64,000 nt of DNA. Source: Podarcis pityusensis (lineage: Eukaryota). Position 1 is the stretch's first letter; every line of letters starts with the position of its first letter. The stretch lies in assembly GCA_964106645.2 (NCBI GenBank), contig OZ067050.1; one strand, written 5' to 3'. Positions 8,048 to 21,917 of the stretch are shown here, piece after piece. Below the pieces are notes generated by a model. It had not been told where the DNA came from. It did not search any database and worked only from the letters and a program-made list of their open reading frames with translations. The position numbers were made by a program, and so were the translations under genes.

Positions 8048-9569
8048 GTAAGGCAGATTCTCTCCATCTGTGGCCCAATGAGGGTTGCTTTATGCTTTGC
8101 AGTTAAAGACAAAAAGGACTGATTGATGTTTCTGAAAGGGTAAAACACTAGCTAACAGCAGTGATCTTTATTGCCTTCTTAAAGTGAGCTACATAACTGT
8201 GTAGTGTAGTGCCTCAGCTGCAAGTGTCTTTGGGAATATGGTTGACATTCATTAGTCTGTGGTACTAGTGGTGTTTCTCACCAGAATCTCTGCCTCCAGC
8301 CCAGTTACCTCCCCATCAGAGAATGTGGCTATGTGTTCTTTCAATTTTGGGGATGCACCTGCTACAGTGGGAAGACTCCATTTGCTGTGTTAGTATGCTG
8401 GAAGCAAAGTGTCATGGTCCTGATTGCACTGGTGCATTTAAAAAGTTGGATCTGGTGACTTGGCTGGTGGTGGGCTTCTGTTTTCTCATGTATTTCTCTT
8501 TGTAGAGTCTGCCCTGTGTCTTGCCTTGCATTCTGTTGAATACAGCCTTTTTTCATTCTGCCTCTAAACTCTTTCTAGCCACATTATCCCTCCTTTTTTC
8601 TTTCAAGACAAGAGACTTCTGATAGTAGTTTTGTGTGGTTAAGTAAAAACAGCCAGACCATTCCAATATTTTTTATGTATGGGTTCTCAAAAGTTCAGTT
8701 CTCTTCCCCACTCCCCATTGTTTGCATTATTTACCCTCTGTCTGTCTGTCTGTCTGTCTGTTTGTTTGTTTGTCCTCCCTTTATTGGTTAATGCTTAGCA
8801 CTTCCATCCCTTTTATATTGTTGCATTTTCCTGTTAGCACACAATTCTTCCTCTTCATTTCTGAATTCTTTAAGTTTTTTCCTGTCTTTGCTTCACACCC
8901 TCCCATTTTCAGCTGTTCCTCTCCAGCTCTTTTCTCCACATCCTCCCTTGGAAACATAACATAATTAAGCTAGGGCTTACCAAAATGTAGCTCTGAAGTC
9001 TTTCAATGCCGGAGCTTTGTTCTGGAATATACTTCATGGTAGTATGAAGAAGTTTCTCAGCAAATTATTTCCAGGAATGGTTGAGCCCAACACCTCTCCT
9101 CAGCCGAGGAAGAAACCAGAATGCAACAAGAGCAGGTTCTCTGCCTCACTAGCATACTCCGATGTCTGTTTCTCCCTCCCTCCCTCCCTGCCAGCTAAGT
9201 TCTTGCTCTAGCAAGCAAGGCAATTGCTTCAGTAGTGCCACACAAATATTTTATGGTAGATTAAAAGTGGGAAAGATTCTGGAAGTTTATGGGTGTGGTC
9301 TTACTTTGTTTGGAATGAGCTGTTTAAAATTGCAGTGCCAAATAAGAAACCCTTTATGTCTTAAAACCTCCTTGTTTAATATGCACTGTAGAGCAGTGCC
9401 ATATTATAAAGAGCTTGAAACTGATTAAACTGGTAGCATGTACCAGAGAAGCTTGAATAATATTTTTGTGAGTATGCTAAGAATTCTTGCTGGAGATCTA
9501 ACACTTTCGCAGATGTAGAATTAATGGGATTCTTAGGAATTGCAGTAGCTCAAACAGCTTTAAAACTAG

Positions 9570-10486: not shown

Positions 10487-10744
<258 letters not shown>

Positions 10745-14150: not shown

Positions 14151-15467
14151 TCACTTCCTCCTGTCTTTCTGTTTCCTCTCTTGACGTCTGCCCTGCTGGT
14201 CAGCCAAGGAGCGTGGTATTAGGATAACACTACCATTACTGGCGTACTGTAGGGCATACTGATTCGGGGAGTAGGGCTGGCCATTCTCATCACGCAGGCG
14301 GCCAAATACCTCCTGATAGAGGTTCTGCACCTTTTGCTTCATCTGGCGAATGGACCTGAGAAACTCCACCTTCTCCCTGAGCAGCTTTGACTTGTCTCTC
14401 TGCAAATCCTCTACATCCCGTTCCAAGTTGAGGATAGTGTCCAGCTTTCTCTTACGACAGTTCTGGGCAGCCATCTTATTCTTGCCCCGTCTCCGGATGT
14501 CCCGGATTAAGCTCAGCTGGGCCTCACTCAGTTGGTACTTGGACAGGAGTTCATTGAATTCTTCTACAGGCAAGTTGATGATCTTCTCGTTGGGGAAAGG
14601 GATCTTCATGGCTCGGGCCCGGTGCTCATCTCGGCTCATCTGCTTATCCAAGAAGTCTGCCTGTTTATCCTTGGCACTCTTCTTCCCCATGGTGGCTGGC
14701 TGGGGCTCATCAGTGTCTAAGGTCCTGGGGGCCATGTTGTAGGTGTGATTGTGACCTACATGCTCCAGATAAGGCAGATATTGCAGCTGAGAAGGGTTCT
14801 GGTAGCTCATACGACAAAACTTGCTGTACTCTGGCTGGTACCCAACTGCCCCTTCTGCATCTTCAACGTCCACATTTTCAGAGTCCGAGTTGTAGCCCAC
14901 AGCACCTTCCTCAGAAAAGGAGGAGGAAGCTGAAGATGATGATGACGATGCTTCTGAGCTGCTGAGAGAAGCAGGACTGTGGCTCGAGTCCAAGGAGAGC
15001 CCCGAGTCGGAATCAAATTCTTCCTCCAGGCGGGAAGCCTGCACTGGGTTGAAGCCTTCTTCGGTGGCCAAGTCCATCAAGCTAATCTCATCTAGCATGG
15101 CTTCATCAAGGAGTCCCCCAAGAGGATCTGGCAGCTCAGGCCCAGATGTTTCGTTTACAGTGCCATTTAACTGGGGAGGGAAGAAGATCCCACTCAGGTT
15201 GGTAGAGCCAAATGTGGTGTTGAAGCCAGTGGAGTTGTCAGGAGCCAGCTGCAACAAAGCTGAGCTGCCAGCTACTGAGAGGTTCTCCATCTCAGAGCTG
15301 AACAAGGAAGCAAAGTCTTGTGTACAGCTGCCCAGTGATGCCTGATGCAGGCTGACATTCTGGTTGATTGGGGTGGATGGAGCAAGGCTGTAGTTGGCAT
15401 TCAGAATGTCTCCACCTGTGCTATCGTACAGGGTCCCTGCAGCTGCTGTGCTGTTCACCTCCATACC
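14151..15467 (-). CDS. NFE2L1: NFE2L1/NRF1 last coding exon (NST glycodomain, AD2, serine repeat, CNC-bZIP)
   Basis: GMEVNST...DSGLS degron, HNHTY, RDEHRARAMKIPF, RDIRRRGKNKMAAQNCRKRK basic region and leucine zipper; tttcAG acceptor at 15469-15468. Confidence 0.98.
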   Translation of the reverse strand, partial: GMEVNSTAAAGTLYDSTGGDILNANYSLAPSTPINQNVSLHQASLGSCTQDFASLFSSEMENLSVAGSSALLQLAPDNSTGFNTTFGSTNLSGIFFPPQLNGTVNETSGPELPDPLGGLLDEAMLDEISLMDLATEEGFNPVQASRLEEEFDSDSGLSLDSSHSPASLSSSEASSSSSSASSSFSEEGAVGYNSDSENVDVEDAEGAVGYQPEYSKFCRMSYQNPSQLQYLPYLEHVGHNHTYNMAPRTLDTDEPQPATMGKKSAKDKQADFLDKQMSRDEHRARAMKIPFPNEKIINLPVEEFNELLSKYQLSEAQLSLIRDIRRRGKNKMAAQNCRKRKLDTILNLERDVEDLQRDKSKLLREKVEFLRSIRQMKQKVQNLYQEVFGRLRDENGQPYSPNQYALQYASNGSVILIPRSLADQQGRRQERKQKDRRK

Positions 15468-19183: not shown

Positions 19184-19399
19184 CTGCGCAGGAAAGCTTT
19201 CCCCTGTCTCGCCATCCACTAGCAAGGCCCTGTCAGCGACATCGCCCCCTCTGCTCCTCCAGCCATCCCCACACTCCTCCCCATTATTTGGTTCTTTGTC
19301 CACTTCGTTCTCCTTCTGGCGGTGGCTGTAGTCAAAAATCTCACGCCCAGCTCCAAGGTCGATATCCTGTCTCCACAGGATGTCAATTAAATCAATGTC
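19184..19399 (-). CDS. NFE2L1: NFE2L1 coding exon 2 (gene exon 3; Neh2-like with DIDLID/DLG and ETGE)
   Basis: DIDLIDILWRQDIDLGAGREIFDYSHRQKE...LVDGETGESFPAQ; 216 nt, phase 0/0; not in the ORF track. Confidence 0.97.
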
Positions 19400-19552
19400 C
19401 TAAAAACAAAAGAAAAACAAGGGGGGACTTAAAAAACTCGTAATAAGGCTTCTCCCTTCCTTGCCGCCCTCTTTTCCCTGGAGGATGCCCTCCCCTGCAA
19501 CTTCACCCTCCCTTGTGACGTACTGCATCCGCCACCATTTGACCCTACTCAC

Positions 19553-19666
19553 CTCCAAGTGCCGCCCTTCATTCTGAATATGGTGCAGCCCCACCTTTCC
19601 TGCTCCTTTTCTGGACCATCCCTGATGTCGTGGGGCTCCAGATACCTTCCCCCCACCTACAGCCAT
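19553..19666 (-). CDS. NFE2L1: Putative alternative first coding exon of NFE2L1 (38-aa N-terminus replacing the ER-anchoring NTD)
   Basis: Strong-Kozak agaATGg at 19666; 114 nt to a perfect GAG|GTGAGT donor, phase 0, 153 nt from the DIDLID exon acceptor. Confidence 0.45.
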
Positions 19667-19859
19667 TCTGCGCTGGGAGCTGGCCAAGAGCGGCTCTGCA
19701 ACGAGGCTGCTCCGGGGCACAGACCGGGAACTCCATGAACAGCAACAGAGCTGTCTCCTTGCCGCTGCCCATGCTACGCAGCAGTGCTCGCTCTGTCCAG
19801 GCAGCAGGGAGTCTGCAGCTTTAACTGCTCAGACGGCTGGCTGGCTGGCAGGCGGAGGG

Positions 19860-20010
19860 AGGGGAGGAAGGAGGGAGGGAAGGGAGGGCCAATTGTCATT
19901 CTGGATTGCTGCTCCATAGCGGGCTTGCATCAGCCTGTGGTGCCATTCTGGCTATTTGCATAAAGGGGTGGGGATTCTCTGCATTTTCAGCCACCTGATG
20001 CAACTCAAGA
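19860..20010 (-). promoter_or_regulatory. Putative internal NFE2L1 promoter with two C/EBP-ATF elements, octamer and CCAAT
   Basis: TTGCATCA 19925-19932, ATTTGCAT 19954-19961, TGATGCAAC 19996-20004, CCAAT 19889-19893, purine tract 19855-19888. Confidence 0.55.
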
Positions 20011-21917
20011 ACCCGGCTTTGCCATGCGTGCTCTGCCTGGCCAGCTCCCTCTGCTCCAGACAGCAGAGCTGCCTACCTTAACCAGCCCTTCAAACTGAAA
20101 GCAAATTGCCCTGCTGAACACATCCAAAACACACTGCCTTCTTCCAGCTACAAAGCAGTGATCAGCCCTCATCCAGACCAGACTCTAGACATGCTTCTCC
20201 TTTGGAATGCCATCTCCCTTCCCCCACAATATCCTGAAAATTCTTCCTCTGCAGGACAGGCCTCTCCCAAGGCTAAGCCACCCCCCACAGGCAGGCTATA
20301 TTTATTCATGCACTGCAGGAGTGTGTTCCTTTCATCCAGGCCCAGCCCTAGAATTGCCAAACACACAGAGGTACCTCCCCACCCTGTGGCACAGGCGGTT
20401 GTTCTTTTTTGTTACAAGGCATATGCAGTTTTTTAAGCGCCACTGTCAGCCAGCACTTCTGGCCCCACCCTCCACAAACCTATTTCTTAAGGAAAACAGA
20501 TACCCACCCACCCCAAACTACTATGCTACTATGTACAGAGGTTACATATGGATCCAGAATTCAGGCTGCCAGAGACACTAATTTTTAAGTTGCTGTTTCT
20601 TTCTTCCAGACAAGAACTCAGCAGAGTAAAGTGCCCTCTTTTTCAGAGCACTACCAAAAGAAAACAGAAAAGTGTCGTGATTTCCCCTTACCCTCCTACC
20701 CCCAATGTCAGAGTATAAGGTTGCTCTGTGTTGCAACACTATTCAGAATTTTCCTCCTGTCAATAATAGCTCTAACTTGAATATGCAAATTCTGGTATCA
20801 GCTTCAATCACTGGTCAAATATTTCAGGACCTCCTTACAAATCAGTCTCTTCTGTAACTGCCAATCCTGTTCTGCTATGGACTCTCACTATCCTCCCCCC
20901 AGCAGAATCAAATGCTCTTTCAGGGCCAAATTTGTCGGAGGCACTATTTGGATCACCTTTCCTCCCCCCCCCCCCACTTCTTGAATTCACCCCAAATTAA
21001 CTAAAACAAGTTTAGACAACCCTCTTCCCCATCTCACAAAATGGGTACCTTGACCAAACCCAACTTTGTTATTCTCCTGCAGTGTGCCCTTTAACACGAA
21101 AAACCCATTCAAATTAAATAATACAATCTGGATGGATGCCTTGTCCAGTTACACACAGAAGATTTCTCAGGTCTCGGGGCAATCTGATGGTGTGGGCAAA
21201 GAGATATGCCAGCAAGGTACCCATCTCTGCCCCCTCCACCTGCATCTTTCAGTAAACAGGCCAGGATACCCATATGGGCCAAAGGCGTCTTTGGTCTGCA
21301 CCCCGTCACCCTCATTTCGACCATCTCCTTCTTCCCAGATGTACCCCCCCCCCATTCCAAGACTCTGCTCACCCTCCCCCACTTCAGGACATTCATTTCT
21401 CACACAACCCATTTCCTCTTGTTCTCAGAGCCTCTCCCTCCTCAAGTCGATATAACACATCCTTTCCCCCCTACAGATTTATTAGCTCCAAGGTGCCTGG
21501 TGGGAAGAGATCTGGCCTGCTCTAGCCACAATCTAATAGCAGGCATGAAGGAGGGGCAAGAAAAGGGTTAAAAGGGATACCTTTCTCATGTCCCCAGCTG
21601 CCGCTCCCAGAGCTGTCCACCCAGATCATGGTCTATGTAGAGCGCAAATTCCGGGCAGGCAGAGCTGGGTGACCCAGGCAGGGTGCTGGACAGACATCTC
21701 TGGTTTCAGTTAACAGTTGCTCTTTTTTTCTTTTCTTTTTTGGCAGGCTTGCCAGCCGCCCCCGAGTTGTTTAGAAGCCCCCCTCCTTTGCCAGCATGTG
21801 ACCCACAGGTGCTGTGCTATCGCCAGCCCTCCTCCCTCCGCCCCAGCATGAGATCCAATCCTCAGCGCTCCTCCTCTTGTTGCTTAGAGGAGTTCCGGCG
21901 AATCCCCACCCCCTGCT

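Follow-up and report, generated by a model that had tools for sequence, protein, structure and literature searches.

A squamate-wide alternative first exon of NFE2L1, predicted to give an anchor-less product, beside a putative promoter core conserved across amniotes

Results and discussion

The NFE2L1 locus and the exon at the end of its long intron

The window, meaning the whole stretch of 64,000 nucleotides of Podarcis pityusensis that was analysed, encodes NFE2L1 (NRF1) on the minus strand. The last NFE2L1 exon shows 100% identity with NFE2L1 from both Podarcis and Lacerta, and the DNA of the locus is about 98% identical to that of Podarcis muralis. An alternative first exon occupies the 3' end of the intron of about 18 kb behind the ER-anchor exon, 153 nt 5' of the canonical DIDLID exon. 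On the plus strand, a CBX1-like C-terminal chromoshadow exon (about 10538-10744, from the translation of an open reading frame) lies tail to tail with NFE2L1. The features of the gene and of the alternative exon are as follows.

about 38233-37750, minus strand: ER-anchor exon, preceding the intron of about 18 kb
19569-19772, minus strand: overlapping out-of-frame upstream open reading frame (uORF) of 67 codons with three in-frame ATGs; stop codon at 19571-19569
19553-19666, minus strand: the 38 codons of the alternative first exon that join the NFE2L1 frame, starting at an ATG with A at -3 and G at +4
19547-19552, minus strand: splice donor GTGAGT, directly after GAG
19400-19552, minus strand: intron of 153 nt
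19184-19399, minus strand: canonical DIDLID exon, 72 codons, which takes the alternative exon in phase 0
near 16.6 kb, minus strand: further NFE2L1 exon
ending at 14151, minus strand: last NFE2L1 exon

All features listed in the first-pass annotation of this stretch were found on the minus strand, a single coordinate that was off by one base being its sole slip. The 67-codon ORF running from the ATG at 19772 through three ATGs to the stop at 19569 could be read directly in the sequence, as could the ATG at 19666 with its 38 codons, the GAG/GTGAGT donor, the 153-nt intron and the in-phase junction with DIDLID. The acceptor, TTTTTAG/GAC at 19399, leads into the DIDLID exon, donor and acceptor are both in phase 0, and retention of the intron would end the frame at the acceptor's own TAG. 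Compared with the other squamates, the window and P. muralis lack about 50 nt of this intron (19400-19552), a lacertid deletion.

As read from the sequence, the 38 private residues are glycine-rich and basic and contain no hydrophobic run. The predicted product lacks the exon that bears the membrane anchor and the NAWLVH segment, which we take to be the DDI2 cleavage site. The uORF ends within the first exon, 5' of every exon junction. A uORF stop placed 5' of all exon junctions could expose an mRNA to nonsense-mediated decay, and on such general grounds the mRNA carrying the alternative exon is perhaps exposed to it. The length of the DIDLID exon, 72 codons, fits the 72-aa gap between the 764-aa and 692-aa RefSeq isoforms; lacertid RefSeq isoforms of 692 and 662 aa retain the ER anchor and skip this 72-codon exon (19184-19399, minus strand).

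Presence of the exon in database gene models

The 38-codon exon is not new; it is an ordinary entry already present in databases. In 20 squamate species covering all major lineages, its N-terminus heads predicted RefSeq/GenBank isoforms of NFE2L1 that are about 632 aa long. An identical 38-aa N-terminus is present in the RefSeq models of Zootoca vivipara (X5), Podarcis raffonei (X3), P. muralis (X4) and Lacerta agilis (X4), and a diverged form occurs in 16 more species among geckos, a skink, a cordylid, an anguid, iguanians and snakes. These include the geckos Paroedura, Heteronotia and Sphaerodactylus, the other lizards Tiliqua, Hemicordylus, Elgaria, Pogona, Phrynosoma and two Anolis species, and the snakes Python, Candoia, Pituophis and Protobothrops. 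Most models carrying the N-terminus measure 631-636 aa, in agreement with the product of about 630 aa proposed by the first-pass annotation, and the proposal of an internal NFE2L1 unit that drops the ER-anchor exon is borne out by the same N-terminus in these predicted isoforms. The RefSeq isoform models are themselves predictions, and the inference of expression rests on models from related species; among the proteins called on assembled RNA-run contigs, the isoform with the 38-aa N-terminus was not found.

A second alternative first exon, at 21581-21589 (minus strand), contributes just three residues, Met-Arg-Lys, ahead of its GT donor (ATGAGAAAG/GTAT); conserved sequence extends 5' of it to about 21650. 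It matches the RefSeq 'MRK-DIDLID' isoforms of 596-601 aa in Zootoca, Podarcis, Lacerta, Anolis, Hemicordylus and Elgaria, and its counterpart in alligator reads MKK. A blastn comparison of the squamate MRK exon region with two mammalian loci, the Nrf1b exon included, gave no match.

Conservation of frame and length among squamates

The orthologous loci of seven other squamates were used, and the 1 kb 5' of the DIDLID exon was aligned; the squamate alignment comprised 7 sequences, to which a gecko was added afterwards, giving 8 species. A block of high conservation spans about 20070-19540, where 35-46 of 50 columns are invariant in most bins, against 3-18 of 50 in the flanks and the short intron. 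Measured between upstream ATG and donor, the exon has a constant length of exactly 220 nt in 8/8 squamates, and every one of the eight leaves the uORF and main frames open and the third closed. The main ATG, its frame, its length and the donor are likewise kept in 8/8 genomes, with GAG/GTGAG invariant throughout. The first uORF ATG (19772) carries G at -3 and G at +4 in each of the eight species, and the uORF comprises 67 codons in seven squamates and 72 in the gecko. Conservation of ATG phase, uORF and donor in related lizards had been proposed as a check in the first-pass annotation, and within squamates it was answered positively in 8/8 genomes.

When the 98 substitutions observed are placed at random, 4.6 breaks of the uORF are predicted, and its retention has a probability of zero breaks, P(0), of 0.005; for the main ORF the corresponding values are 3.9 breaks and P(0) = 0.017, the test being a crude one in both cases. 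The substitutions among squamates are spread evenly over the codon positions in both frames, showing no codon periodicity, and neither frame displays a synonymous excess. The retention of frames and length, together with the lack of synonymous excess and periodicity, indicates that selection appears to act on openness and length, holding the frames open and the length fixed, and not on the peptide sequences.

These observations bear on the possibility that the 67-codon ORF itself encodes a functional small protein and is the selected product in place of an NFE2L1 isoform. In 8/8 squamates this ORF stays open at a near-constant length, and it begins with a strong first ATG, as would be expected for such a protein. 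However, the part of the uORF that does not overlap the main frame shows 11 synonymous changes against 11.4 expected, the matching ATG in alligator opens an ORF of only 25 codons, and searches found no such protein. We therefore regard a selected small protein as highly improbable. A conserved RNA structure of the leader was rejected as well, with a covariation term of +0.63 and a single-sequence z-score of -0.68; the nucleotide conservation of the exon is thus present without conserved RNA structure as its explanation.

A conserved module upstream of the exon

The most useful new result of this analysis concerns the putative promoter core, which is an amniote-wide conserved element with two ATF4-type sites. 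The 11-species alignment on which its description is based comprises 8 squamates, alligator, the naked mole-rat and a Myotis bat. The elements of the module and of the sequence between it and the uORF are listed below.

19880-20015, minus strand: core of the conserved block, a promoter-proximal regulatory module and amniote-wide conserved non-coding element in the 11-species alignment
19996-20003, plus strand: first C/EBP-ATF composite-type site, the 8-mer TGATGCAA (TTGCATCA on the minus strand)
19992-19997, minus strand: E-box CAGGTG, abutting the first site; invariant in 11/11 species
19965-19973, minus strand: CACCC-type box (CCCCACCCC); CCACCC core invariant in 11/11 species
19954-19961, minus strand: octamer ATGCAAAT; invariant in 11/11 species
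19925-19932, minus strand: second C/EBP-ATF composite-type site (TGATGCAA); kept in 10/11 species, with TGATACAA in Pituophis
19889-19893, minus strand: inverted CCAAT box (ATTGG within GACAATTGGCC); invariant in 8 squamates and alligator
about 19888-19835, minus strand: pyrimidine/CCAGCC tract
19811-19834, minus strand: 24-nt inverted repeat GTCTGAGCAG TTAAAG CTGCAGAC with a TATA-like centre; invariant in squamates and partly kept in alligator

The paired sites had been reported at 19925-19932 and 19996-20004 in opposite orientations. The former position and the opposite orientation hold, but the latter interval is one base too long, since the 8-mer ends at 20003. The octamer at 19954-19961, the CCAAT box (in inverted form) and the pyrimidine tract are all present in the sequence as had been described.

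The first site reads TGATGCAA in 6/6 lizards (the gecko included), alligator and mole-rat, TGATGTAA in snakes and TGATGAAA in the bat. It varies only at the degenerate N of TGATGNAA, which is C in lizards, alligator and mole-rat, T in snakes and A in the bat, and TGATG-AA is kept in 11/11 species. The flanks of both bZIP sites are invariant in the 11-species alignment. By number, the TGATGCAA 8-mer is not enriched in the window, with 6 occurrences found against 4.2 expected and 30 of 100 shuffles reaching 6. The occurrence of the motif alone proves nothing, and it is conservation that lifts these sites above chance; in a control that reached as far as alligator, neither of the two further TGATGCAA sites of this intron has flanks conserved there.

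Searched with an nhmmer profile built on the squamate block, each outgroup gave one strong match, with E = 1.8e-58 in alligator, 5e-22 in the naked mole-rat and 3.3e-23 in the Myotis bat. In both mammals the block forms the conservation peak of the intron, about 350-550 bp 5' of the DIDLID exon, and no conserved exon adjoins it in the intron of either species. The inverted CCAAT box is not kept in the naked mole-rat or the Myotis bat within the 11-species alignment. The putative promoter core of about 130 bp with its two TGATGNAA sites, newly recognised here, would accordingly be older than the mammal-reptile split. The inverted repeat with TTAAAG is likely a putative core promoter or start region, and the E-box, CACCC box and octamer beside the bZIP sites suggest combinatorial or tissue-specific control. 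Inside the block, 15 nt that separate the AAATGCAG motif from the CACCC box in alligator and both mammals (columns 43-57 of the 11-species alignment, near 19974 in the window) are missing from 8/8 squamates, a squamate-specific deletion.

The coding part has a different history outside squamates. In alligator the CCAAT box, TTAAAG element and upstream-ATG region are still present, as is the ATG matching the squamate main start (locus sequence 8370-8410). The alligator main frame, with 18 nt deleted after that ATG, meets a stop after 10 codons, and this truncation agrees with the lack of such an isoform in the alligator annotation. Conservation beyond squamates, also suggested in advance as a check, therefore holds for both sites in alligator and mammals but not for the coding exon, which is truncated in the former and has no adjoining counterpart in the latter. 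The broken frame in alligator and the lack of an adjoining exon in the two mammals indicate that the block can persist without the coding exon.

This persistence raises the question of whether the block is chiefly an intronic enhancer, serving the main NFE2L1 promoter or a neighbouring gene, with the exon as a low-level by-product that yields little protein. The block standing alone in the intron of the two mammals, and the alligator frame broken despite a retained block and start region, are what an enhancer would predict; 38 codons without selection at the amino-acid level, and a strong overlapping uORF that should limit protein output, point the same way. However, an enhancer with an incidental exon leaves unexplained the fixed 220-nt length, the ATG with its context, the open frame and the donor in 8/8 squamates spanning the whole order. 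Predicted gene models contain the exon in 20 squamate species, and the CCAAT box and the TTAAAG element are spaced as in promoters. On balance, a block that is chiefly an enhancer is considered unlikely.

Proposed mechanism and the case for stress gating

The evidence is best explained by a squamate-wide alternative promoter and first exon of NFE2L1 giving an anchor-less product, equipped with a brake uORF and an older bZIP module; we assign this explanation a probability of roughly 70%. Transcription would start near 19830-19790, 3' of the inverted CCAAT box and the TTAAAG element, driven by the module of about 130 bp through factors on the two C/EBP-ATF-type bZIP sites, the E-box, the CACCC box and the octamer. 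Scanning ribosomes would reach the strong ATG at 19772 first, and most would translate the 67-codon uORF, with the ATG at 19666 reached by leaky scanning only. The uORF would mainly serve to keep the level of the anchor-less protein low. This protein would probably be constitutively nuclear and never glycosylated. Stress-responsive bZIP factors may boost its transcription, ATF4-C/EBP dimers being the leading candidates.

The first-pass annotation had gone further and proposed that the integrated stress response (ISR) controls the unit twice, with ATF4 on the two composite sites transcribing it and eIF2-alpha phosphorylation letting ribosomes bypass the uORF. For the transcriptional half, the two TGATGNAA sites are shared by lizards and mammals. 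In mouse fibroblasts, ATF4 ChIP-seq identified Nfe2l1 as a GCN2-dependent target (PMC9436309, data set GSE166590; reviews PMC10404558, PMC9941348), a published binding that fits the conserved TGATGNAA sites. However, the text of the mouse paper (PMC9436309) does not state the position of the ATF4 peak within the Nfe2l1 locus, and several other bZIP dimers recognise the same 8-mer. The transcription arm of stress gating thus finds some comparative support and is still to be treated as hypothetical.

For the translational half, an overlapping out-of-frame uORF is present in 8/8 squamates, as the model would have it. However, the ATF4/ATF5 mechanism needs a short uORF permissive for reinitiation, and no ATG occurs in the 62 nt (19834-19773) ahead of the upstream ATG, taking the predicted start of the leader; ATGs at 19917 and 19899 sit 5' of the CCAAT box. 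Bypass of the CHOP/GADD34 type needs a weak upstream ATG, whereas the one here, with G at -3 and G at +4 in 8/8 species, has a strong context. A literature search found no link between uORFs and NFE2L1 isoforms. The ATF4/ATF5-type layout that had been claimed for the uORF is consequently not seen, and the architecture speaks against the translation arm of stress gating. Because no short uORF lies upstream and the context of the upstream ATG is strong, the uORF looks like a constitutive brake and not an ATF4-type switch, which is also the simpler reading. Taken as a whole, ISR control at both levels appears distinctly improbable.

The broadest form of this idea holds that the two-CARE module is the ATF4-bound element of NFE2L1 in all amniotes and, in squamates, the promoter of an ISR-driven, translationally eased anchor-less NRF1; this, too, we consider rather doubtful. 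If it were true, ERAD, NGLY1 editing and DDI2 cleavage would all be bypassed by the NRF1 that the ISR produces. The amniote block of about 130 bp with its two ATF4-type sites offers a precise candidate for the action of ATF4 on mammalian NFE2L1. Overall, the earlier interpretation is partly supported: its observations are confirmed and its structural half appears to hold, while stress gating has the standing of a hypothesis.

Comparison with known systems

C/EBP-ATF response elements (CARE/AARE) occur in ATF4 targets such as DDIT3, ASNS and TRIB3. The squamate module resembles them in its two TGATGNAA cores, which are deeply conserved and show variation, at the first site, at the degenerate position. 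It differs in that the sites, here candidate ATF4 elements, are interspersed with other motifs (E-box, CACCC box, octamer).

The uORF resembles uORF2 of ATF4 and ATF5, being out of frame, starting 5' and ending 3' of the main ATG. In contrast to both, no short uORF1 precedes it in the likely leader, so that delayed reinitiation has nothing to act on. With its strong upstream ATG it also differs from the weak-ATG bypass of the CHOP/GADD34 type.

The closest published counterparts of the squamate exon are mouse Nrf1b and human NFE2L1-616. Mouse Nrf1b arises from an intronic promoter and gives an anchor-less, nuclear and active NFE2L1 (Kwong et al. 2012, PMC3483171). Human NFE2L1-616 likewise starts from an intronic promoter and is anchor-less; in human cells it resides constitutively in the nucleus and activates ARE reporters (Ho et al. 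2023, PMC10646089). The first-pass annotation had rightly cited Nrf1b as a precedent but missed both the closer NFE2L1-616 (PMC10646089) and the existing annotation of the exon. The squamate exon shares the features of this class, being a private exon between the anchor and DIDLID exons, with an in-frame junction and no hydrophobic anchor. Its likeness to NFE2L1-616 extends to the location of the promoter, putative in squamates, which both times lies in the intron separating the ER-anchor exon from the DIDLID exon, and to a private first exon that joins DIDLID in frame and contributes 44 aa in human and 38 aa in squamates.

The differences were examined in the two mammals compared, the naked mole-rat and the Myotis bat. 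The exon of the 616 type (MTRLDRSS...) lies about 600-650 nt 5' of the conserved block in mole-rat and bat, whereas the squamate exon lies directly 3' of it, and the 616 peptide is without sequence similarity to the squamate 38-aa peptide. Nrf1b has a private N-terminus of 12 aa (MGWES...), and its exon lies about 1 kb 5' of the block in mole-rat and bat. Neither mammalian locus showed a match to the 38-codon exon. That the squamate exon is orthologous to Nrf1b or 616 was rejected on account of the opposite side of the block and the lack of a sequence match. The location of the squamate exon on the other side of the block, together with its lack of similarity, points to a third, non-orthologous solution built on an older module. 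Anchor-less NRF1 would thus come from at least three non-orthologous intronic first exons, those of Nrf1b, NFE2L1-616 and the squamate isoform, which argues that a form of NRF1 free of ER processing has been repeatedly useful.
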